A DNA stretch of 64,000 bases from Schizochytrium sp. TIO01 (taxonomy: Eukaryota > Protista > Bigyra: Labyrinthulomycetes). Every line of letters begins with the position of its first letter. Position 1 is the first letter of the stretch. The stretch spans positions 3,634,747-3,698,746 of the forward strand of contig SMSO01000037.1 in the NCBI GenBank assembly GCA_004764695.1, read 5' to 3'. The notes beneath the pieces were generated by a model, which ran no database searches, was not told the origin of the DNA, and saw nothing but the letters and a program-made list of their open reading frames with translations. A program made the position numbers and the translations under genes. This document shows positions 49,871-64,000 of the stretch, one piece after another.

Positions 49871-50674
49871 TCTCTCTCAAGCCTCTGATGACGCAGCCGC
49901 TGCCACCGCGGTTTAGCTCAGAGAGATCTGAACGTAAGCTTGAACCACCCCGTTGTCACAAGGGGACTTCCGACGTATGTGGCAGTCACCGTGGGCACTG
50001 CGCAATCAAAGGGCACGCTCCACGCGAGGACCTGATCGATTGCTTTGGCGCGAAGGTCGCTCGCTCTTTCATGATTAAACCCGTATTTACATTTTCTCCA
50101 CACTTTGTTGTATTCCCTAATTACCTCTATTCCTAAGTATGATCAGATGATGAGGTGGTACTAAGGCTCAAACAGAGGGAATACATGCATGAAACTTGTA
50201 TTATGGAATGACCGAGGGAGAAAGCAGAATAGGTGGAATGAGTGATTGAAAAAACAGGAGTGAAATTTTGAAACAACCGACAAAGACAATCTGCAAAAGC
50301 TGTTGGGAACTCCAAGTTATTTCAATGTGACAAGAGCAAAGTAGTGATTTACTAGATATCAGCAGCATGTCTTCTTACACATCGACTGCAATCAATTGAT
50401 ATAATTGTAGTCTGCAGCATTAATTTGTAGCTTTACAGCCTAATTGTTTTTTCTTGTTTTTATGTTGTCATCATTAATGAAATATAAATAATGGTGATAG
50501 AAGAACACTTATTGATGATCGATCAATCGTGAATGTTATTTTGCTCCACAAAGGGAGACCCAAAGCCTAAGCTCAAATCTTATATAAATCGCAGACCTCC
50601 GCTTCTCAAACTTTCATAAGGTATCTTGAAGCTAGGTTAGCTGCTTTGACCGCCGGCTAGTGTCTGACGCAACC

Positions 50675-50844
50675 ATGGGCGACCAGGAGAGCCAAAACTG
50701 GCGCCAGGCCGCAGGCACAGGAGTACCAAGGCGCGGACCAGGCGAAGCAGCAACCGCAGCAGCAGCAACAGCAGCAACAGCTCACGATTCTGGACAACCC
50801 AAACCTACGGGAATTGCGGCTCTAGCTGCGAGAGTTAAGAATCA

Positions 50845-50875
<31 letters not shown>

Positions 50876-52879
50876 TATTTTCACCATCGTCAAAACCACC
50901 AAGAACAAGAGCCGCCAAATTATTATCAAGCAAAACATGTTCAGCAGCACTCACAGCGGCAGTACCAATCATCAAGACAACAGAATGGTGCAAATGCAGC
51001 ACATACAAATGGTAGCTCTCAAAAGAAAGTTTCATTAGCACCAACGAATCCGTGGAAAATACTGCAACCGCCTCGAAACCAAGACGCCAATATTGACAAG
51101 TCAGATAGTTCAATGTCGAAGTCTCCTACACAGCCTTTGGGACAGGATATATCCAAGGAGGCTCATCAAAAAGACCTTGATGAATCAGTATTTGCAAGCA
51201 ACACAACTACGACCTCTGCGTCAGATCAGGATCACAAACCGAAACAAGGAAAACGTCAAGGCCAGCAGAAACAGCAACAAGCTGGTGGGAAGCCCAACAA
51301 ATCTCCAAGTGCACCAAGCAACCAACAGCACCAGACTAATGGGCGCCGTAGAAACAATAAAAAGGGCCCTCGTGAGCCCCAGCGTCCAATGGTCATTCTC
51401 CCCGCAGGAGTGGATATGATGAATAAACCTGTGGCAATTTTAGGTGCGAAGCGAATCGACACTTCTGCGATAGCTATTGCAGGTAAGGGAAAAGAATTGT
51501 CCCCGGGGAACTCAGCTTCTCGCTCTGGAGCTGGAAAGAAGCAGTCTAAATCACCAGCCTCTGGAAAACAACAGGATGGAAATAGTGCAGGCTCCAAATC
51601 ACCTTCTGCCCGAGCACCTCTAGCGTCTCCAAGCAAACCCCCTACCCCTAAAGAGAAATCACGTTGGGCACACGAACTAGTAGATGCAAGATTTGGATTC
51701 GCAGCCTCATCTGCTTCTTTGCCAAGTCATTTATGGCATGCCTCAAATAATAAATACCGCGTTGTTGGTGTGTTGGGCACACAAAGCAGTGGGAAAAGCG
51801 CTCTTCTGAACGCATTGGCGACGTCAAGCCTAACATCTAACCCTGCACAAAATGAAGTTCCTTTTGTGGAGAAGGATTTCGAAGATAGACATGGAATTCT
51901 TCATCAAACAAGGGGCATTCAGTCCTCCTTTTGCACTATTGGTGGAGAACGAGTGCTGCTGTTAGATACCCAGCCGGTTTTAAGTCCGTCAATTTTATAC
52001 GACCTCATTGAGCGTCAAGCGAATCTAAACCTGTGCAGTTCGCATGCTTCACTAGCGACCTTACACGACCTTCAGCTTGCGGTATTCTTGCTCTCCGTGT
52101 GTGATGCAGTGTTGGTCGTTGAGGATGACAATGTGCGGGCTCGGGGTCTATGGAAACTCTTACGTTTTGCTTATCTTTCTAAGACTGGCGATGCTATCAA
52201 AGATAAGGTTGCAGATCTAGTTTTAGTGCGAAACTTTATGAGCACCGCAAGGCTTGAATGCGCCGAGACTCTTGGCAAAGAGCAAGATGCCTGGATCAGC
52301 TTTTTCACTGATCTGATCCCATATGCTGCAAGTCATCCAAAACTCTATTTTTGCCCTCTAGGGTTATATGGAAAGTCCATTGATTCCACCGCCTCAGAAG
52401 TAGACTTTATAAAGCACGTTCTTATGTACGAAGTATTTGATGCTGACGGTTCAGCCTCCACCGGGAGAGCTGGGGCATGGTTAGATCATTCTCGAGCAAC
52501 TGATAGCGCATGGTGGCCATCTGTGGCGCTCCCAGACGACTATAACACAGATGGTCATGACTCAATGACCGAGGAGGAAAGCGATTCTGATAGTGATACT
52601 GATGATGGCATTGAAAATGATTCTGGCTGCAACGCCGTTTGCCCGAGTGCAGGAGATTCTTTCGCACATTTGCATACGCTGCTTGCCTACCGTCGAGCTC
52701 ACCCAATTTTTAAGCTGATAGCGTCTTTGAATGCATCAGCACGATCTACATGTACCGATCGCATTAGTGAATCTGACTGGGTTGACCTTGCTAGTCGGCT
52801 TTGGATGCGAGAAATCCCGCATTCAATCCCGCTGCGAGAGTTTGCAGTTGTTTGTGACGGCTTGCTGCTCTCGACGTAA
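50675..52879 (+). CDS. SMG9: Nonsense-mediated decay factor SMG9 (P-loop G-domain) with Gln-rich disordered N-terminus
   Basis: VVGVLGTQSSGKS, HQTRGI, ERVLLLDTQPVLSPSIL and LQLAVFLLSVC. First ATG at 50675. Confidence 0.85.
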
Positions 52880-53335: not shown

Positions 53336-56300
53336 CTAAAGAGCCACCTCGGGGGAAGGATAGATGCCGTAAGCCCGAACACGGTTGATGCCTCCATCGG
53401 GAAAAACCTTCAGACGAAGCTGAGAGACTTCTGGACACGCATCACTGATCTGAAAAACTTTGGCATTGCCAGCGTATGCTTTTACAGGAGTAAGTGCAGC
53501 CATTTCAACCCATTTGCCAGACTTTGACAGGCCCTCCATGGAGATCTCTCTTGGATTGTTATTAACAAAAAAGGTGAAGTCCAGTTCAACGCGCTGCAGC
53601 TTCACAGGCACAGAGAGTTGAATCACTAATTCCTCGTGATGGTTCGGCTCGCGGGAGCGTGCACATTCAAAGCCATCATGCATGGACAAAGGAATAAAAG
53701 GAGAGAGAACTTGGGCAGCTGGGCCATAATGCTGGTTTGTAACGGAAACTAGCTTGCCACCAAATGCAAGACTTGCAGCATCAAACTCTTTTCCTACTAC
53801 AAGAGTAGACAAGTTATGCGCAACCTCCTCAGGTGTTGGCTCATAAAGAAGTTGAAGAGGTTTTTTGGTACTGGGAATTGCATCACTATAGCGAGTGCAC
53901 TTTGAATCCTCTACAGGCACAAAAGTGTCAGTCAAAGATGAGAGCAGAGAGTCTTCTTCGAAGAGTCCCACACGAGAGAGACCCCCATCAGGAAATATGT
54001 CCACTTGAACTTTATCTACCAAAATGGCAGATTGGTAGTCTGGAACCAAAACACGCTTTTCAGCATGACCATCAAGGTGGGTCTTGGGTACTAAAACGAT
54101 CCAGTCATCAGAGTCTTTGCATTTTCCAGAGATTCGCACGTACTCAGCCTGGTTGCCCAAGTGATACTTAGTCGAGATACTAATGTAACGAATACGGCCA
54201 GGACGAGCGAGCGCAAAAATCGCAAAGTCATACTCTTCTGGGTTGTGACGAGCTGTCTCCCAGCTGTCCATAACTTTACCCATAGGGCAAAATAACTCAG
54301 GATCAAATTTGGGTAAGTGATCAGACCCAAGTTGGCACGCTCGCGCGAAGCGCTGGTTAGAGACGCGCTCGACAGTCGAACCAACCAGCAGGTTCGCTGT
54401 TGCTAAAGGGTCCACAGGTCCTTGATCAATGATTTCAGATGGGAGAGTTGGTTCGAACGCCACAAAAACAAGATTCTTGTAGCCAAAGTTAACAATTTCC
54501 TCCTGAGGAATCTGATTGATGTCAACGCTGGAGGTAGGAAACTTCGAGACATCAACACCCTTGAGGTTCATCAGACGGAGAATCGCCTGGCAAGACTCAG
54601 CAATAAAAAACATCGCCCGATTGTCACCATTGGCAAACGCAGTAATACCCTCCCCAGCGTTTGGCCCATCGAAACAATGAATGTAGATGGCACGGTAACC
54701 ATCGTTTGCACCTTGGTGAATCGCAAAGCGGTTAGGGCCTGCCTCACCTACAAAGACGCCAAGTCCCATCAAAACACCCATAAAGTCACGGCACCCTTTA
54801 TCAGTACCATGAAGCATTTTGATAGCGGTATCATGGGAGATTGGACCACAACCTTCCTTGTTGCGGTATGCTTGTCCAAGCTGGTCAAGGAATCGCGTCA
54901 TACCACGCGGGGTACCCAGCGCGCCTGCAGCAAAGGCAGGAAACATCTTTCGAGTTGCCTTAATTGTGCAGCCAATATCATCATAGCCGCATGCAACGTC
55001 ACTGTTCTCGGGTTTGTAAGCAAAGGTAATATCATGTTCGATACCAAGAGCTTGGAGGAAAGGCCTGGTCAATTCGTCAATCGATTTGTCACCACCTTCA
55101 AGCTGCTCAATCAAATGTTGAAGGACAAGAAACCCACCACCGCTGTATTGAAATAAACTTCCAGGCTTACCAACAACATCAATAGGTGGGTATCCATACC
55201 TTTCATTGCCTTCAAGAAAGTCCCGAGTGTCGGGCATTGTTTCATCAAGGGGAACTCCGTTGACGTAATGCATGTTGAGGGCGCTGTGACTCATAAGATG
55301 CCATAGAAGAACCTTGTCACCGTATTTACTGTGACGAATACGAAACGTCGAGGTTGTTTTCTCCAGCAGATCATTGACAGGAGTGTTCAAAGAGATATTG
55401 CGTTCACCAAAGTACTCGATTGCAAACGCAGATCCGATGGTTTTGGAGAGTGAAGCAATTTCAAACATGGTATCTGGCTTGACCGCGGCCTTCATACGGT
55501 GGGCATCCCCGAAGCACACGGGTTGGCCATTAAGGCAAAAGCTAGCGCCAGCAACCTCGTGCTTCTTGCGCAATGACTCAATAGTCTCCAGTAAGTCATC
55601 AGTGGGCTCATCGATGAGACGTTTCATTGTGATTTGCCACAACGCTTCACGTGCATTCTCAAGTTCTTGTTCTGCAGAATTGTTAATTCTATTTTCAAGG
55701 ACGTCGAGAAGTTCTTGGGCTGACTTGCCCTTGGCCGAAACAAGAAACTTGACACCGAACTTTGCAATGTACTCAGCCCCTAATTCACAAAGTCGAAGCC
55801 GAGCATTTTCAGCGTTATCATCCACCGAAGCGAAAACCTTAGCCTGTTCAGCACTTGCAAGCTTGTCGAGCTTACCTGCACCTTGACCAATGTCACCATG
55901 GAACCCAGCAGACTCGATAACTTCTTCTAGGTTGAAACTGCGAATAACTCGTTCTGCTAGTTCCATGTCTGTGGCTACCGTTTTTGCCATGGTTCGCGCA
56001 AATCTCATGGCACCACAACGCTCAAAGAAGTAATGAAATCGCTTTGCATAGGGGTCCTGCATTGCGTATTTTACTGCATCGAATGCGGCCGCAGCCTCCC
56101 ATGGATTTTCACTTGTGCGAATACGATCCACAGTGAATGGATACAACAGTTCAGTCACGAACTCCACTGGTTTGGCGTCACAGACAAACTTGAGAAGGAG
56201 CTCCATAGCGACTGGATACCACTTTGCAGTTTTAGGAGACCACTCTACGTGCACAAGCTTACCTTCGCGCACTTTTCCACGACGGATAGCATTGAGCTCT

Positions 56301-58090
56301 TCATGCGCAATGCGAAGAAAATCCTCTATCGGGAAGCGGCCATGGTGGATCTCAGCCCAGAGCTCCCAACGAGAGCGTTCAATGGTTGCCAAGTCATCAA
56401 GGACCAAAACTTGAACATTGTCCACCCGAGCTGGAAGTCCAACGCAGCCGTTGCCTGCTAGCCAGTCAGCGAGATATTGGAGGGACTGGAAAATGTTATA
56501 TCGGATTTCTTCGGGATCATTGTTTGCAACTTGTGCTGACTCGGCAACGTTAGCAACCACAAGTGAGCGAGCAAAGTTTGGTGCACCAACCTCAACAGGC
56601 CCAGCAGGATCTTGACCTTGAGCAAATGCAAGGATTTCTTCTTGATGAATTTTATCAAGAAGAGTCTCTTTGACGAGCTGTTCAAATGCAGGCATGTCTT
56701 TGTCCCATGTAAGCGCAATGGCAGTGGCCACACGAACATAGCGAGGGTCTGCAAGCCAGAAGCCAGTAAGACCTCTGCGAAGTTGTGTGACAATATCTTT
56801 GAAAAGACCACGCAGAGCAATCTGCAATGAAGCATCTTTTGTGTCCCACGACAAAGGCAAAACACCATACATACCTCCAATAGGCAAGCCTCCACGTCCT
56901 CCAATGACACGAGAAACCAATTCATGGGAAGCCTTGACATGTTTAAGTACAATAGTTGTATCGGCTTTAACCGGAATTCGAAAGTTCGGATCTTCCTTAT
57001 ATAATCGTGCTGTTGCTGCCAGGTAGTCATGCCAGCCCAATGAAGCGCCAGCAAAGTAAGGATGTAAGGCGTCGGCAATCTCATTGGCGCGAAAGATTGC
57101 ACGCGGGTTCTCGAGTACAACTAAAACTCGAACAGTGCCAATCACATATGCTGTATGGATGGCTTTGATTTCGCGCTCAACAGTTTGAATAAGATGTGCA
57201 AGATAGGCAGCCTCTTCTTCGTTTTCAAGTTTCGGCATGTAAAAAACTAAAGCTTCTGGTTTGTCCCAGTGTTCAAGGATATGGAGGGCGAGCTCGAGGA
57301 TGTGGAAAGGTACAGGCTCGCTGTTCGCCTGAAAGACGTACGTACAGGGTAGAGCCAAACCCGGGAGACGCTTGAAAGCTTGAGAGAGAGATGCAGGAGA
57401 GCTAGAGCCCTGGGTCATTTCAGGTTTGCGTTGAAAACATGCTGAGAGGTTAGCGTTGGCAGTTTCGGTCGTATCACGCAAAGGTGTTTGAGAATCTTCA
57501 AAGTCAACACCCCATCGAGGAGGTTTATCTGTGGTAGCCAAAATCTTCTCAACGCAAGCCGGTTCACTTGCAAGGCGAGCGTCATGCGCACAGAGTGCCT
57601 TCTGGCATCCCTCTGCGCTGTCCGCCAGGCCAAAAACTGTAACGTGTTCACCTTTAAGAAATTCCGGTAAAGCTTCGATTTGCTTGCCGGAAGGCTGTGC
57701 AAAGTTGTCGGTAATTGGGCCTATTACCACACGGCCATCAGCATCTCGCTGGCCAAAGATGGTGCCATAGGACTCGTCATTTAGCTTGCGGCCTAGTTTC
57801 GCATTGAGGCCTGCGCAAGCTCGCATGCGCTGGTCAATGAATGCTCTATCTTTTTTGCGTTGCGCAAGGACTTTGGCTAGTTCTTTACGCATCTCGCGAC
57901 AGACTTTTGCCACAAGGCCAGATCCTTGACCAAGGAGTCTCTGCGGGACTGGTTCAGAGACTAAAAGATGTTCATTTGAAACGTGCGCCATCGCATCATC
58001 GCCATCTTCATCTTGGCAGATCTTGCGAGCATCTGACGCAAGGCGCTTTGCAAGCTCCTTCGGGATTGTTTCTTCAAAAAGCATTGTCAT
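53336..58090 (-). CDS. Four-domain purine-catabolism fusion: malate synthase-like + OHCU decarboxylase + beta-lactamase-family serine hydrolase + allantoicase (1584 aa)
   Basis: aa ~50-655: DFEDS, KRLPGL, FYMPKLENEEEA, VVLEN, LGWHDY, GGMYG, WLAGNGCV, DDLATIERSRWELW. aa ~683-826: HGDIG, SAEQ, YIAKFGVKFLVSAKGK, RINNSAEQE, ITMKRL. aa ~832-1175: FEIASLSK, LMSHS, PGSLFQYSGGG, HQGAND. aa ~1232-1576: two allantoicase repeats (MDSWETAR..FPDGGLSRV and DGFECARSR..FPDGGINRVRAYG). Confidence 0.9.
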   Translation of the reverse strand: MTMLFEETIPKELAKRLASDARKICQDEDGDDAMAHVSNEHLLVSEPVPQRLLGQGSGLVAKVCREMRKELAKVLAQRKKDRAFIDQRMRACAGLNAKLGRKLNDESYGTIFGQRDADGRVVIGPITDNFAQPSGKQIEALPEFLKGEHVTVFGLADSAEGCQKALCAHDARLASEPACVEKILATTDKPPRWGVDFEDSQTPLRDTTETANANLSACFQRKPEMTQGSSSPASLSQAFKRLPGLALPCTYVFQANSEPVPFHILELALHILEHWDKPEALVFYMPKLENEEEAAYLAHLIQTVEREIKAIHTAYVIGTVRVLVVLENPRAIFRANEIADALHPYFAGASLGWHDYLAATARLYKEDPNFRIPVKADTTIVLKHVKASHELVSRVIGGRGGLPIGGMYGVLPLSWDTKDASLQIALRGLFKDIVTQLRRGLTGFWLADPRYVRVATAIALTWDKDMPAFEQLVKETLLDKIHQEEILAFAQGQDPAGPVEVGAPNFARSLVVANVAESAQVANNDPEEIRYNIFQSLQYLADWLAGNGCVGLPARVDNVQVLVLDDLATIERSRWELWAEIHHGRFPIEDFLRIAHEELNAIRRGKVREGKLVHVEWSPKTAKWYPVAMELLLKFVCDAKPVEFVTELLYPFTVDRIRTSENPWEAAAAFDAVKYAMQDPYAKRFHYFFERCGAMRFARTMAKTVATDMELAERVIRSFNLEEVIESAGFHGDIGQGAGKLDKLASAEQAKVFASVDDNAENARLRLCELGAEYIAKFGVKFLVSAKGKSAQELLDVLENRINNSAEQELENAREALWQITMKRLIDEPTDDLLETIESLRKKHEVAGASFCLNGQPVCFGDAHRMKAAVKPDTMFEIASLSKTIGSAFAIEYFGERNISLNTPVNDLLEKTTSTFRIRHSKYGDKVLLWHLMSHSALNMHYVNGVPLDETMPDTRDFLEGNERYGYPPIDVVGKPGSLFQYSGGGFLVLQHLIEQLEGGDKSIDELTRPFLQALGIEHDITFAYKPENSDVACGYDDIGCTIKATRKMFPAFAAGALGTPRGMTRFLDQLGQAYRNKEGCGPISHDTAIKMLHGTDKGCRDFMGVLMGLGVFVGEAGPNRFAIHQGANDGYRAIYIHCFDGPNAGEGITAFANGDNRAMFFIAESCQAILRLMNLKGVDVSKFPTSSVDINQIPQEEIVNFGYKNLVFVAFEPTLPSEIIDQGPVDPLATANLLVGSTVERVSNQRFARACQLGSDHLPKFDPELFCPMGKVMDSWETARHNPEEYDFAIFALARPGRIRYISISTKYHLGNQAEYVRISGKCKDSDDWIVLVPKTHLDGHAEKRVLVPDYQSAILVDKVQVDIFPDGGLSRVGLFEEDSLLSSLTDTFVPVEDSKCTRYSDAIPSTKKPLQLLYEPTPEEVAHNLSTLVVGKEFDAASLAFGGKLVSVTNQHYGPAAQVLSPFIPLSMHDGFECARSREPNHHEELVIQLSVPVKLQRVELDFTFFVNNNPREISMEGLSKSGKWVEMAALTPVKAYAGNAKVFQISDACPEVSQLRLKVFPDGGINRVRAYGIYPSPEVAL

Positions 58091-58517
58091 TCGTGCACCT
58101 CAGGTCTGTCGCGTCTGACTCCAAGACCTTCGTTTCAATTCGCTGTTTATTTCTGCAGCTTTGTCCAATCTGAGTTGACCTTCGTCGTTTCACGTCTTCT
58201 TCTCTGCCAATCCTCCAGGACAAGGCAGGACACGCAGGATGAAGGCAGAAATAGAAATAGGCGAGAAGCTTTCAAAAGCTCCACTTCTTGACGCGAGCAA
58301 GTTCGTTGTGCCTGCTGCCGGCCTTCTCTTGTACTTGGGGGCTGGATGGCTCTGCGTGGGTGTAGCTGTGATCGCTTGCAGCGCTTGCGGTTCAGGCAGC
58401 GCGGAGTCCCTTGCGCACGGGGCGCAGACGCACGAACGGGATTCGAGTTCTGCCGTTCCTTGCGCTCAAGCAAACTAGGAAACAAAGAAAGAAGGAAAAA
58501 GACAGAGAGAAAAGAGA

Positions 58518-58518
<1 letters not shown>

Positions 58519-58548
<30 letters not shown>
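58519..58548. repeat. (GAAA)n microsatellite upstream of the fusion gene
   Basis: Directly visible. Similar tracts lie at 18422-18448 and 32302-32331, with (CT)n at 59373-59404. Confidence 0.8.
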
Positions 58549-58549
<1 letters not shown>

Positions 58550-59367
58550 GAGAACACAGAGTAATCGCTAACGAAGTATGTATCGAAACTTAGCTTTCTA
58601 TTTCATTCAAATATAAAAGAGTTTTTCAAGAAGAGTGCTTTTGCAAATGAAGAGCTTCGCCCACTGGACGCATACGATGCGTCAGACGAGCAAGCAAGCA
58701 AGCAAGCAAAGCAAGCAAGCATGCTAAAATAAATCTTTCCTTTCTTTCAAAAGAAGCAATTCCAAGATAGGGATTGAAACGATAACAATCAACAGTCAAA
58801 CAGTTTAACAAAATACCAAACAACCAAACAACCAGACACCTCAGCTCATGGTGGAGAAGAAGACATTCTCGTCAAGTTACCCCAAAAGCTCAGCAGCCCC
58901 GTCTTCTCTGTCTAGAGACCGCCTCTTATGCTCTCGCAGGCTGCGAGCACGGAGAAAAGTCCTCTCGTTTCGTATGTGCTTATCAACCAACACCTTGTAA
59001 AGGAAAGGAAAGGAAAGAAAATGAATGCAACTTATACAATTAAAGATAAATTAAAAGACCAATTAAAAGATAAATTAAAAAATAAATTAAAGTTTTGAGC
59101 TAACATTTCGATTCCCTGATTTTGGCATTTTCTCAGAGCGAATCGCTGCCGCGTCGAGATAGTGTCCTAAAGGCGGGGAAACGCCGCGCATACAGTGCGA
59201 ACTTGCGTGCAATGGGGCTCGTCACCGCGCGTATCGGGGCCCCTCCCACTTCCTTTCCGTCCTTCAGCCACGACGTCTGCCCATGCGCAGATGTCATCGC
59301 AGTGTCCACAGCAAATCAAATCGACCCAACCAGAACTACTAAGAATAAGAGGCACCAAACGAACACG

Positions 59368-59409
<42 letters not shown>

Positions 59410-62400
59410 GTGAATAAAAATGAGATCCCTTTTCGCGCCCTCCTCCCCACTGCGCCTGAGAGAGCCTTCTCCTCACAGGGATTTACAGAGGGCTGTGAGG
59501 GGCTGCACTAAGTTTTAAAAAAAAAAAGCTCATGTGAGGTGATTTTTACAATTTATATATATATTTAAAAAGGAATAATAGATTTTTTTCTATCAGATTT
59601 TCCGTCCACAACACCTGCTCTGCTTCATACACACTCGAAGGTGTAAAACAAAGAAATCTAAAAATCCTCCCACCTTTGCATCGACGGCGAACCCGGTATA
59701 GTAGGTATAACGGAGTGAATGCGCTGATCGATAGTGGATACAAGTTTGATAATGGTCGAGCGCGAACCGTCTCTCTACTGCTTTCGTAGGGAAATCGAGG
59801 CGCAGGCTTCTTTGGGAGGAGTATGGATGTTGATGTTCCGCCGTGCCGACGTAGGCACTTGTAGATAAAACTCACTCTGTGAAGATGTAGAATGGGAACC
59901 CACAAGGGCGGAGGACCCCAGCGCCTGATGCAAGCAGGTTTCGGCAAGCAGGTTTCGAAGTAAGTAGAAAAATTCGAAGAGCGTATGCACAATCGCTTGC
60001 CTACAGCGAATTGGCAACAGAGAAGGTACCTACCTACCTACCTACCCGTTTGGATTTCTTATTCAAGGAAAGAAGTCTGATATTTGGAGCATGAGACCTT
60101 GGTCATGTAGTTGTGTATTTCTATGTTCGCAGCGGACGATGGCACCCACTGGCATGCTTAAGTAAGTATGCTGCGAGGCATTCATTCATATGTTTGGGGG
60201 CGTTAGAGCTGTATGCCAGGGTAAAATCACACTGCTGTGTTTTCAGGAATTTGGCAGTAGGGGTTGTTTACGCATCGTCACATGTTTAACATTTTAGGTG
60301 AAGAATATGAGCAATCTACATGGCTCATGTGCTAAATTTGACAGTTCTGCAACCTAGCGCTAGTGCCTACATTTTATTTTTTACCATTCTGCTAGACCTA
60401 TGCCCTGGCACATTCAAGCTGTAGCAGCCAGAAGGTATACTTTGTTCCTAAATTATTGGAATTTTACAACGAAACAAAACGCAAATGAGCGAGGACTCAA
60501 CCTTTCTGTGTGTTTTGCAGACTCCTCTCCAGAGTCTTGAAGTTGTCGCTGCTCATTGAGCTCATTTGAAGGATGGCTACTTTATCGAGTTTCAGCAGCT
60601 TCTCGATCTCAATTTTCGTTACATCATTCGAGTAAAGACAGCAATCTGTAGTCCAAATAGGCACTCTATCAAAATCACATTTGGTAATGTCAGCTCTTCC
60701 TCCGCCCTGGGGAACCCGTATCTTCCTATACTAATTCTCTATGAAGCCGCGAGTTCCTTGACCTAAGAATTGCAGTGCGTAGCGAGCCTTGATACCAACG
60801 AGTACCTTTTTAAGTCCACGTCTTACGGCATTGGAGCATGTATGGTAGGTTTAACCAAGCCATCGGGCAATCAAGAGCAGCTTTGTTCTCACCCTCACGA
60901 GCCATTCAACTAAATCGAAGGCTGCTGCGTGCTTCTCTACTGCCTAGCCCTCAGACATATTCATGGCTGCTAGCTTGATCCTTTTCTTACATACCTACCT
61001 CTCTGATGTACGCTGCACAGAAATTGAAGGAGTGTCTTGTGGCCTGATACCTATCGTGGATTGCTCAAATCGTGGCTCACAGAGCTCACTTGGTGATCAT
61101 CTCGAGCAATCTCGAGCAATGGGGTGCTAGCAAGCTACCTGAACTCTGGTGGTCCTGCCCTTAGGAGGTGTGGCTACGAATCACAGGGGCAGGCGGAGTA
61201 ATATGTACTTCGGTATTATCATTTATCCCATGATATCTTTACTTTCGGAGCGAACGTGAAGTGTGAATGGACATGAATGTGCCGCCCTAAGCAAGCCAGA
61301 AGGTCGGCAAACGGGTGGCTTTGGGTGCTCCATCCATCTTCCACCCTCGACGTTCGATTGTGCCTTCTGCATGGACACTGGCTCGACCTGGCGAGGTAAA
61401 CTCGAGCCGCATAGATAAAGTCTGTGATGTCTAGTTGCATACGCTTGAATCGAAACTCAAGCTCCTTCAAGAGATACTGAAGCGCCTGAGTTCACGGGCT
61501 TCTTTACTAAACGGAGACCATGAATTTCTAAAATTTAGTTTTAATTTCTTTTTAATTTTGGTAAAACAGGAGTAGGAATGAATACTACTAGGAGCTTACA
61601 GATGGAACTTTGTAAGCTCATTGTAGTAGAACGAAATTAAAAAGATTTTGAAGAGGATTTCAAGTCTGGGTGGATTTGAGAATCAAAGATGCACAGTTGA
61701 CTCATTCATTGATGCATTCAATCCCAGTCCAAAACGAGCTGTACCATATTTGTACCGATAGTGTACCAATACTTCATCATTTGTAGGTTCTCTTTGCATC
61801 TCGCAAATTTAGGGTCGTGTTCCTGCCTTTGTCTGGACCCAGCTTAAAGCCTGTGCTCTAATTCGCTTTAAAATCATAACGAGAGGCAAAGCAACTTCAC
61901 TCATTATAGTACTACGTTGGTCACGCGTTACCCACAATCCTCCACCCTTTGATCGACGGCGAACCTCATATTCTGACCTAAATATCTTCCAAAAGGCATG
62001 TTCCGCCGGGTACTCTGCAAGTCTTTCCCTTTTTCCGCCTCCAAGTTCTAATATCTACATTAAGTACATTTAACTACATGCATCATAAAATGCCCCCTGA
62101 CGCTGCAGCTGGGAGACTCCCTGGTGGGCGAGGAAAAGGTGAGGAAAAGGAAAGAGAGATAGAGGGCACACTGAAAGACCCTTTTCACAATGCTCAGTGT
62201 GATGTGAGAGATGAGGCCTCAGTGGTATGAGAGGGAGAGAGTATTTCTTTCTAGGTTTCTTGAAAAAATAAAAGAAAAAATAGTTGTTAAATTTATATGT
62301 CTAAGAGAGTGAGTGCTACTCCCCATGAAACCTTTTTTTTTTTTCGTCGGCTTAGAAGGCCCTGCTATGTGTGGCTATAGGTATTCCTTAGGAATAGGCC

Positions 62401-62831
62401 GATCCTTAGCAATAGGGGAAGAAGGAGAGCAAAGAAAGAATGCAATAGAAAAAGAATGCGAAAGAAAGCGAAAGGAAGAAAGAACGAAGCAGAGACAGAA
62501 CTATTTCTAGCAAGAGCTTGAGTCGGGACAGGTAAGCCGCAAACCTTTGCAGCGAAGTTGCAGCATACACGATACGACACAGCACGACGCAAGATATTGT
62601 TACAGAGAAATATAAATTGGCCGCAGGTCTGTAAAGTTTACCTCTGCGCTCGCGAGCAGTCCTGAAATCGAGAACTGGCCTGTCGATATCACTGTTGTTA
62701 TCCAACAGCAGCAAGAAAAAGCACTCCAAGGCCATCCTGGACGGAGATATAAGCGACAATAAAGATTGCGAGGTTGCAAGCTCAAAGCTCCAGCTCTTTG
62801 TGAGGGACTGCACAGACCAGAAAGGGCCAAC

Positions 62832-64000
62832 ATGTTTGATTTGGATGTAGTTATCGTTGGAGGCGGCATCGCTGGCCTCAGCACCGCGCTGTTCCTTAAG
62901 CGCTTTGGTTACAATGTAGTTGTCTACGAGCGGACTCCTAAAATCTTGCCCGTGGGTGCTGCAATTTCTGTGTGGAGTAATGGTGTCAAGGTAATGAACC
63001 GTCTTGGCTTTGGCAAACAAATGCAGGAGCTTGGAGGCCAGATGGATTCAATGATCTATCGCGACGAAAAGGGCACAGAGCTAGTCAACATGGACTTGCG
63101 TCCGGTATACAAGGAAGTCGGGGAGCGTTGTTATCCGGTACCTCGTGCTGATCTGCAGCAGATGCTCATGGACCAGTATGTCGCCGAGGGTGGCAACTTG
63201 GTCTTGGGTCGTTCCTGCGTCAGCGTTCACAAAGTGGATGAGAGCGACGAGAACAGCAAGCTATATGTGAAGTTCGATGATGGGTCAAAGTCGATGGAGT
63301 GTGACCTTTTGGTCGGTGCTGACGGGATTCGCTCAAATGTTCGCACCTATGTGCTTGAAAAGGAGGTTGCGCCTGTATACCACTACACAAACTGGAATGG
63401 TCTTGTTACCATGGACTCTGCAATTGGCGAGCAGACTGAATGGGTTATGCACGTTGGAGAGGGCAAACGCGCATCGGTCATGCCTGTCGGAAATGGACGA
63501 TTTTACTTTTTCATGGGTGCTCCTATCGCAGAAGATGCCCCCGCACCCGAACGCGGATCGGAGGCTATGCGTGAGGAGCTCAAGCAGATCTTCAAGGGCT
63601 GGCCCGCAAAGGTTCAGAATTTGATTGATGCTATTGATGTTAACACGTTGAACCGCATACCCATTTGCGATGTCGACCCTCTTCCTCACTTGTGGCGTGG
63701 CCACGCGGTACTGATTGGCGATGCTGCTCACTCGACCACACCAACTCTCGGCCAAGGCGGCTGCCAGGCGCTTGAGGACTCGGAGGTGCTTGCATCCTTC
63801 CTCACAACCACCAATGTGGGGGTTGCTGATGCTCTATCTCGTTACCAGCAGCACCGCCTCGAGCGAGTCCACACAATGGTGCTTAAGGCTCGTGAACGTA
63901 CAGCACAAATCTACCCTCGTAATGCAGAACAGGAACGTGCAACACAAGAATGGTATAATGAACTCAAGACTTCCAAGGACATTGGAACTAATATTCTTCG
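62832..64000 (+). CDS. hpxO: FAD-dependent urate hydroxylase (HpxO-like flavin monooxygenase); 3' end runs off the window
   Basis: Manual translation from ATG 62832 (in-frame TAA upstream at 62760): VIVGGGIAGL, GAAISVWSNGVK, RADLQ, LVGADGIRS, YTNWNGLV, VGEGKRASVMPV..GRFYFF, LIGDAAHSTTPTLGQGGCQALED, MVLKARER and WYNEL. These match recalled HpxO-specific motifs beyond the generic monooxygenase fingerprints. Confidence 0.88.
   Translation, partial: MFDLDVVIVGGGIAGLSTALFLKRFGYNVVVYERTPKILPVGAAISVWSNGVKVMNRLGFGKQMQELGGQMDSMIYRDEKGTELVNMDLRPVYKEVGERCYPVPRADLQQMLMDQYVAEGGNLVLGRSCVSVHKVDESDENSKLYVKFDDGSKSMECDLLVGADGIRSNVRTYVLEKEVAPVYHYTNWNGLVTMDSAIGEQTEWVMHVGEGKRASVMPVGNGRFYFFMGAPIAEDAPAPERGSEAMREELKQIFKGWPAKVQNLIDAIDVNTLNRIPICDVDPLPHLWRGHAVLIGDAAHSTTPTLGQGGCQALEDSEVLASFLTTTNVGVADALSRYQQHRLERVHTMVLKARERTAQIYPRNAEQERATQEWYNELKTSKDIGTNIL

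Follow-up and report, generated by a model that had tools for sequence, protein, structure and literature searches.

A 64,000-nucleotide stretch of the Schizochytrium sp. TIO01 genome, hereafter the window (G000:C36:3634747-3698746, within a 5.0-Mb contig of a 64-Mb assembly of 37 contigs), carries at its right-hand end a + strand gene whose product appears to be an HpxO-type urate hydroxylase dependent on flavin and NAD(P)H, with urate as the predicted substrate. Surveys confine HpxO to bacteria and treat the uricase Uox as the eukaryotic urate oxidase (PMC4562309). The gene stands head-to-head with a gene encoding a four-domain fusion protein. Weighing the evidence as a whole, we consider it likely that this is a eukaryotic HpxO that replaces Uox, bears a type 1 peroxisomal targeting signal (PTS1) and sits in one half of a split ancestral purine cluster.

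Specifically, the HpxO-type enzyme would convert urate to 5-hydroxyisourate (HIU), standing in for the cofactor-free uricase usual in eukaryotes, and the fusion would contribute OHCU decarboxylase, allantoicase and, probably, two further ureide steps. A eukaryote-only HpxO clade (labyrinthulomycetes and chlorarachniophytes) would have descended from one cyanobacterial-type gene and gained a short tail at the C-terminus that resembles a peroxisomal targeting signal, which in the present protein is PRL. The ancestral cluster is envisaged with guanine deaminase, a TauD-family dioxygenase, HIU hydrolase, HpxO and the fusion side by side; in this genome it would have split into fusion plus HpxO on contig 36 and TauD, guanine deaminase and HIU hydrolase on contig 33, the HpxO-fusion spacer growing to 4.7 kb. 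In the literature on HpxO in eukaryotes and on urate hydroxylase in labyrinthulomycetes and chlorarachniophytes, we found no account of such a clade or cluster; in plant papers, 'FAD-dependent urate hydroxylase' (FAD, flavin adenine dinucleotide) is apparently an annotation label for plant genes and does not denote HpxO orthologues.

Family assignment of the HpxO-type gene

The gene and its motifs are located as follows, where A1 denotes an alignment of 23 sequences (19 eukaryotic and 4 cyanobacterial HpxO).

62832..64000 (window part), + strand: HpxO-type gene for a putative FAD-dependent urate hydroxylase (NF033623 and 3rp6 matches; Hondaea protein 83% identical)
62859..62876, + strand: GxGxxG dinucleotide-binding motif of the FAD domain, G10-G15; G10, G12 and G15 invariant in A1
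63456..63470, + strand: GEGKR, residues 209-213, with Arg213 as the equivalent of Klebsiella HpxO Arg204 (PDB alignment; invariant in A1)
63717..63779, + strand: GD motif region, G296-D316, which binds the FAD ribityl and pyrophosphate groups in class A flavoprotein monooxygenases; conserved in A1

An hpxO-like open reading frame (ORF) had been read from position 62832 in the first-pass annotation, and both its start and its family stand. The ORF is intronless, opens with the ATG at 62832, encodes 405 residues ending GPWPPRL and overruns the window by 49 bases (the last 16 codons and the stop; the whole gene is L001:1533-2750). Because all 22 of its relatives in A1 begin with the same MFDL residues, we take this ATG to be the true start. 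Pfam FAD_binding_3 gives a full-length match spanning residues 4-350, and the GxGxxG, DG and GD motifs of class A flavoprotein monooxygenases are all kept. In particular, D164-G165 of the DG motif is invariant in A1, as are G296, D297, P304, G307-G310, A313, E315 and D316 of the GD region.

The protein scores 476.6 bits with the HpxO equivalog model of NCBIfam, NF033623 (profile positions 1-381), just short of the curated cut-off of 500 bits, which was set for bacterial annotation; the next family reaches 196 bits, a 2.4-fold gap, and HpxO from cyanobacteria and Acinetobacter attains 603 and 632 bits. The gene is therefore filed here as a member of an HpxO-type sister clade, not as a strict NF033623 equivalog. 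Additionally, Klebsiella HpxO (3rp6) is the top PDB match (E 6e-83, 282 bits), followed by tropone 2-monooxygenase (130 bits, E 8e-37). By both the PDB scores and those of NCBIfam, 466-477 bits against 196, the protein is closer to characterised HpxO than to other characterised flavoprotein monooxygenases.

The arginine of GEGKR, proposed earlier as the counterpart of Arg204, aligns with the sole position that differs between 3rp6 (GEGKR) and 3rp8 (GEGKQ), as that proposal would have it. We take 3rp8 to be the R204Q mutant of Klebsiella HpxO and Arg204 to be, presumably, an active-site residue. Arg213 is invariant in 23 of 23 eukaryotic and cyanobacterial sequences of A1. The HpxO of Klebsiella pneumoniae/oxytoca (EC 1.14.13.113; PDB 3rp6-3rp8) thus shares family, fold, FAD motifs and the active-site arginine with the protein described here. 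Unlike it, the present gene is eukaryotic and nuclear, falls in a separate long-stemmed clade just under the curated cut-off, and encodes a PTS1-like C-terminal extension absent from bacteria.

Purine gene linkage in this genome and in a relative

The head-to-head arrangement recurs in L013, a 15.9-kb metagenome contig of about 41% GC, which encodes an HpxO that is 64% identical to the present one and ends in PRL. Directly upstream lies a divergent 1434-residue ORF with the same four-domain order as the fusion, 52% identical over its full length, and no more than 114 bp separate the two ATGs. On the downstream side of HpxO are, in order, genes for an HIU hydrolase, a TauD-family dioxygenase and a protein in which the CDA-fold deaminase domain occurs twice; the five purine genes stand in a row, spaced by tens to a few hundred bases. 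In the present genome, the orthologues of HIU hydrolase, TauD and the deaminase (50%, 58% and 66-68% identical, respectively) lie within 10 kb of one another on contig 33, flanked by unrelated genes. The tandem deaminase has its best match in Bacillus subtilis guanine deaminase (E 1e-34).

L013:9675-10154, - strand: HIU hydrolase of L013, with an N-terminal extension containing RLSKLSCQM
L013:10219-11103, - strand: TauD-family dioxygenase of L013, ending SRL
G000:C33:2888567-2898186 (L018, L020): second purine sub-cluster of this genome (TauD, guanine deaminase, HIU hydrolase)
G000:C33:2888567-2889481 (L018:6568-7482), - strand: TauD-family dioxygenase of this genome
L020:4370-5596, + strand: tandem CDA-fold guanine deaminase, contig 33 sub-cluster
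L020:6798-7187, - strand: HIU hydrolase, contig 33 sub-cluster

We infer that L013 is eukaryotic in origin, because its HpxO nests in the eukaryotic clade beside Aplanochytrium-type sequences, because its HpxO and TauD end in PRL and SRL, because its ion channel best matches eukaryotic KCNH/KAT channels, and because its domain-less ORF has a homologue in this genome, the two sharing lineage-specific ORFs. Since the HpxO-fusion pairing recurs in this distant relative together with further purine genes, we regard it as real linkage. Non-homologous genes of the same pathway adjoin one another in numbers of two in the window, three on contig 33 and five in L013. We read the window pair as half of an ancestral purine cluster, kept compact in one lineage and divided in this one. 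The cluster resembles the DAL cluster of Saccharomyces, which groups allantoin catabolism genes (PMC13751858; Wong and Wolfe 2005 as cited in PMC10120013): both are eukaryotic and unite non-homologous genes that act one after another in recovering nitrogen from purines, with a malate-synthase-type gene included. Distinct from DAL, the cluster described here contains HpxO, TauD, guanine deaminase and a multi-domain fusion, covers steps upstream of allantoin, and is split in two in this genome and compact only in the relative.

Some further observations concern the cluster genes. On contig 33, 6 kb without a recognisable gene separate TauD from the deaminase. An HpxO 72% identical to the present one (P0003) and a TauD at 66% (P0130) both have a longest contig of 170,950 bases, which is an indirect hint of linkage only. 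A scan of viral contigs for misbinned eukaryotic contigs found none.

The two start codons in the window are separated by the following interval.

58091..62831, no strand: divergent spacer of 4741 bp in which microsatellites, but no gene, RNA or mobile element, can be recognised

This agrees with the 4.7-kb gene-free spacer described earlier between HpxO and the - strand fusion start at 58090. No ORF longer than 148 residues lies wholly inside it, and it gave no Pfam, Rfam or tRNA match; apart from microsatellites it is single-copy in the genome. Relics of HIU hydrolase, TauD or the deaminase were found neither in the spacer nor downstream of HpxO, all matches having E >0.2. Among the 13 gaps between ORFs of at least 250 residues in the window, the spacer is one of the three largest, with only two larger. 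The cluster can therefore not be called compact here, as the first-pass annotation had it; the compact form is that of L013.

The two genes may be co-regulated. Alternatively, their linkage could be one of descent alone, the neighbours having been left over from the old cluster with separate promoters and an adjacency that plays no regulatory role now. The size of the spacer fits this explanation, as do the removal of the remaining cluster genes to another contig and the lack of k-mers shared above background by the five upstream regions. On the other hand, the pair has stayed head-to-head although the rest of the cluster scattered, the k-mer comparison is weak with five sequences, and a trans-acting factor needs no shared promoter. 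We regard linkage by descent only as a substantial minority possibility.

The gene inventory of the assembly points in the same direction as the family assignment. Searches of the genome, which did not include HpyO, turned up neither Uox nor PuuD (a membrane urate oxidase with cytochrome c), and neither of two domains searched for molybdenum xanthine dehydrogenase (XDH) was found. The genome holds one HIU hydrolase, which ends in the YRGS of its family and lies on another contig than HpxO, a single OHCU decarboxylase domain, located in the fusion, and a urease. Phylogenetic-profile reasoning has been used for urate oxidases before (PMC4562309). HIU hydrolase and OHCU decarboxylase, both specific for products of urate oxidation, co-occur in this genome with HpxO alone, in the absence of Uox and PuuD, and HpxO adjoins both in L013; we therefore take HpxO to be the probable urate oxidase of this genome. 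The situation is like that of the hpx purine-utilisation cluster of Klebsiella, in which HpxO also lies beside other purine-catabolic genes in a genome without Uox, yet the partners here are a four-domain fusion and a TauD-family enzyme and not HpxDE or HpxT-type genes.

An enzyme of this kind could, however, act on a different substrate (another purine, a hydroxypyridine or a phenolic), with urate oxidation absent or carried out by some other enzyme. Class A flavoprotein monooxygenases shift substrate readily, and both the score beneath the equivalog cut-off and the long eukaryotic stem of 1.06 changes/site would suit such a shift. Yet the next-best family and structure reach less than half of the HpxO scores, the counterpart of Arg204 never varies in A1, neither Uox nor PuuD turned up as an alternative urate oxidase, and the HpxO of L013 is flanked by the OHCU decarboxylase-containing fusion and by HIU hydrolase. 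In bacteria, too, hpxO is immediately followed by a same-strand HIU hydrolase gene in 35 of 88 loci, mostly cyanobacterial (L021-L100). We consider a substrate other than urate quite unlikely.

Origin and targeting of the eukaryotic HpxO

The nearest named relative of the HpxO-type protein, at 83% identity, is that of the thraustochytrid Hondaea fermentalgiana (GBG28753.1), annotated only as 'Monooxygenase 3', which points to a labyrinthulomycete-type stramenopile as the host of the gene. A word search returned a protist set at 59-83% identity, whose named members are Hondaea and Aplanochytrium (labyrinthulomycetes) and Bigelowiella, Lotharella and Chlorarachnion (chlorarachniophytes); beyond this set, identity drops to cyanobacterial HpxO at 46-51%. 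Of the best 80 bacterial loci, taken with one genome per species, 79 are cyanobacterial or unclassified (four without a phylum in their titles) and one is from Acinetobacter. In an unrooted tree of 18 eukaryotic, 15 cyanobacterial and 7 proteobacterial sequences, the eukaryotic HpxOs form one clade with support of 100/100 on a stem of 1.06 changes/site, and a split supported at 97/100 separates this clade plus 13 cyanobacteria from 2 cyanobacteria plus 7 proteobacteria. The phylogeny thus attaches the eukaryotic clade among cyanobacterial HpxOs, and the eukaryotic gene is most likely derived from a cyanobacterial-type gene, unless the root lies on the eukaryotic stem. The bacterial acquisition considered in the first-pass annotation is accordingly plausible, most likely with a cyanobacterial source, and depends on that root position.

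Could the bacterial-type gene reflect contamination or misassembly? Apart from the cyanobacterial affinity of its nearest non-eukaryotic relatives, the evidence speaks otherwise: the gene is embedded in a 5.0-Mb contig, 1.3 Mb from the contig end, its flanking genes are of eukaryotic type (ARM-repeat and polyglutamine proteins), and it is 46-50% identical to bacterial HpxO against 83% to Hondaea and 59-64% to protist transcriptome proteins. This explanation is so improbable that it can be set aside.

None of the malate-synthase-like, beta-lactamase-fold or TauD genes occurs in the 88 bacterial hpxO loci sampled. Transfer of the whole cluster en bloc from HpxO-bearing bacteria is thereby out for the sampled genomes, and the cluster would have been assembled in eukaryotes or from several sources. 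In Acinetobacter stercoris, allantoicase adjoins hpxO.

Past position 64000, where the first-pass annotation had left the C-terminus to be read, HpxO ends after 49 bases with the PTS1-like tripeptide PRL. This agrees with the PTS1 pattern [SAP][KR][LM], which is conserved among the orthologues: 13 of the 19 eukaryotic HpxOs in A1 end in PRL, ARL, AKL or SKL, and SKL ends two of the three aligned chlorarachniophyte proteins, those of Chlorarachnion and Bigelowiella. All four aligned cyanobacterial HpxOs stop right after a conserved GPL, whereas the eukaryotic ones run a few residues further. PRL is among the experimentally validated PTS1 tripeptides of plants (PMC3427985). Because this conserved extension is PTS1-like and absent from the cyanobacterial proteins, the C-termini argue for a peroxisomal and not a cytosolic HpxO.

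Several points weigh against the favoured reading of a PTS1-tagged eukaryotic HpxO in half of a split cluster. The score lies just below the curated NF033623 cut-off, as given above. PRL has been validated as a PTS1 in plants and not in stramenopiles, and the fusion, the HIU hydrolase and this genome's TauD have no recognisable PTS1 or type 2 signal (PTS2), so that the pathway may span compartments. The tree is unrooted, and outgroups of paralogues from the organism's own genome were saturated (branch length 10), wandered and lowered support. Synteny rests on one relative locus, a metagenome contig of inferred eukaryotic origin. The spacer is long and gives no direct support for co-regulation, and the five upstream regions in this genome have no enriched k-mer in common, a comparison of low power with five sequences.

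The fusion gene and the remaining steps of the pathway

The fusion is a single ORF, as are all the genes described here; it has 1584 residues and lies on the - strand, at 53336-58090, and in it Pfam places a malate-synthase-like domain, an OHCU decarboxylase, a beta-lactamase fold and two allantoicase repeats in this order.

56141..58090, - strand: residues 1-650, divergent malate-synthase-like domain, candidate ureidoglycolate lyase (Pfam MS_TIM-barrel 63 bits, MS_C 37 bits)
55613..56047, - strand: residues 682-826, OHCU decarboxylase domain, with no second copy elsewhere in the genome (Pfam, NCBIfam)
54620..55585, - strand: residues 836-1157, beta-lactamase-fold serine hydrolase domain (Pfam PF00144 68 bits)
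53336..54391, - strand: residues 1234-1584, allantoicase in two repeats; the protein ends EVAL (Pfam PF03561 160.7 bits, two stretches)
G000:C13:4640228-4642423 (L011:493-2688), + strand: separate canonical malate synthase G, 731 residues, ending SKL

The N-terminal domain is not a canonical malate synthase. It scores 88 bits with TIGR01344, the malate synthase A equivalog, against a cut-off of 594, and reads LGWHDY where Escherichia coli malate synthase A has CGRWDY, such that a Trp stands in for Arg276; the metal ligands remain in place, as do the catalytic Arg and Asp. Its nearest relatives, at 45-50% identity, are proteins of about 680 residues from Desulfobacterota, Myxococcota and Bdellovibrionota, some of them already fused to OHCU decarboxylase and beta-lactamase-fold domains. 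This family is large and mostly bacterial, with generic names or none (e.g. P0169, P0192, P0200, P0257), and the brown alga Cladosiphon has a version that combines the malate-synthase-like domain with OHCU decarboxylase.

Metazoan malate-synthase-like proteins in which Arg276 is likewise replaced have been shown to be ureidoglycolate lyases (PMC10120013). Because of these homologues, because no AllA-type ureidoglycolate lyase was found in the genome, and because a separate, presumably peroxisomal malate synthase G is encoded elsewhere, we lean towards a ureidoglycolate lyase for this domain. With that activity, the fusion would end at glyoxylate and urea and not at malate. Similar to the metazoan protein DrMSL (PMC10120013), the domain is a divergent malate synthase homologue that is linked to allantoicase and purine catabolism and has its Arg276 equivalent replaced with the glyoxylate- and metal-binding residues kept. 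Distinct from DrMSL, the replacement here is Trp and not Ile, the counterpart of Trp365 is retained, three other domains are joined to this one, and its nearest relatives are bacterial, whereas the published ureidoglycolate lyase clade is eukaryote-only. Membership in that clade is not supported, given these bacterial relatives.

For the step from allantoin to allantoate, the beta-lactamase-fold domain is a candidate, because neither a DAL1-type (canonical) nor a PuuE-type allantoinase was found in the genome and because the domain lies between OHCU decarboxylase and allantoicase.

The first-pass annotation had read the two window genes as a cytosolic, peroxide-free route that leads almost completely from urate to malate. 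It was right that the fusion has no PTS1 (it ends EVAL here and SQD in L013), and no PTS2 match was found in the fusion of either genome; HpxO chemistry, moreover, gives water and not peroxide (PMC4562309). Both facts suit a cytosolic route by two genes alone. However, HpxO bears the conserved PTS1-like end, with canonical SKL in chlorarachniophytes, and the TauD of L013 and malate synthase G end in SRL and SKL. Two genes also do not cover the route: HIU hydrolase is a third, unlinked gene on another contig, no canonical allantoinase was found, and malate as end point is undercut by a malate-synthase-like domain that falls far below the malate synthase A cut-off with Arg276 changed to Trp, with malate synthase G encoded elsewhere. 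A cytosolic two-gene route is hence unlikely, and through the separate malate synthase G glyoxylate can be predicted to reach malate in peroxisomes. In this genome, TauD terminates in GKM and HIU hydrolase carries no extension. The HIU hydrolase of L013 begins with an extension whose RLSKLSCQM is one residue off the PTS2 consensus, which the orthologue here does not have.

With HpxO taken as peroxisomal, the route from urate to allantoin would run like that of eukaryotes with Uox, HIU hydrolase and OHCU decarboxylase, in three steps of which the first enzyme is apparently targeted to peroxisomes. Unlike in that pathway, the first step here would be catalysed by a hydroxylase that works with reduced flavin, uses up NAD(P)H and yields water, whereas Uox is cofactor-free and makes peroxide (PMC4562309).

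Upstream of urate, the TauD-family dioxygenase is linked to purine genes both in this genome and in L013, and this neighbourhood makes it a candidate xanthine hydroxylase. Its best PDB match is generic and reaches only 56 bits, the protein atlas label is 'TauD family', and its nearest relatives are unnamed protist, Bacteroidota and ciliate proteins, with no named XanA among them. A specific name was therefore rejected. Fungal XanA, which we take to be an alpha-ketoglutarate-dependent xanthine dioxygenase, offers a parallel: a TauD-family enzyme could in principle make urate from xanthine without molybdenum XDH. The enzyme here differs from XanA in having no close relationship to any named protein.

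A wider proposal, which we put forward tentatively and hold with much less confidence than the reading of HpxO itself, is that labyrinthulomycete-type protists have a whole purine-to-glyoxylate pathway of non-canonical enzymes from one ancestral cluster. A CDA-fold guanine deaminase and a TauD-family xanthine hydroxylase replacing molybdenum XDH would act first, followed by a PTS1-tagged cyanobacterial-type HpxO replacing Uox and by HIU hydrolase; OHCU decarboxylase, a new beta-lactamase-fold allantoinase, allantoicase and a malate-synthase-fold ureidoglycolate lyase would then act from one polypeptide. If true, eukaryotic purine catabolism would be free of molybdenum and its urate oxidation free of peroxide, with largely bacterial-type parts. 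A monophyletic, PTS1-tagged eukaryotic HpxO clade would mean that the first step of uricolysis was replaced in at least two protist lineages and that the replacement went to peroxisomes despite making no peroxide, which bears on why uricolysis is peroxisomal. The cluster also offers candidates for three steps for which no gene was found here, namely molybdenum-free xanthine oxidation, allantoin hydrolysis and ureidoglycolate cleavage, and would be a rare catabolic cluster of eukaryotes that can be seen both compact and dispersed. Genetic tools for thraustochytrids have been reported (PMC7200600), so that these predictions are open to direct testing.

Tail-to-tail with the fusion gene, 456 bp away, lies a 739-residue ORF on the + strand (50660-52879), whose N-terminal half is a long polyglutamine and low-complexity region and whose C-terminal half contains a P-loop, GTQSSGKS.

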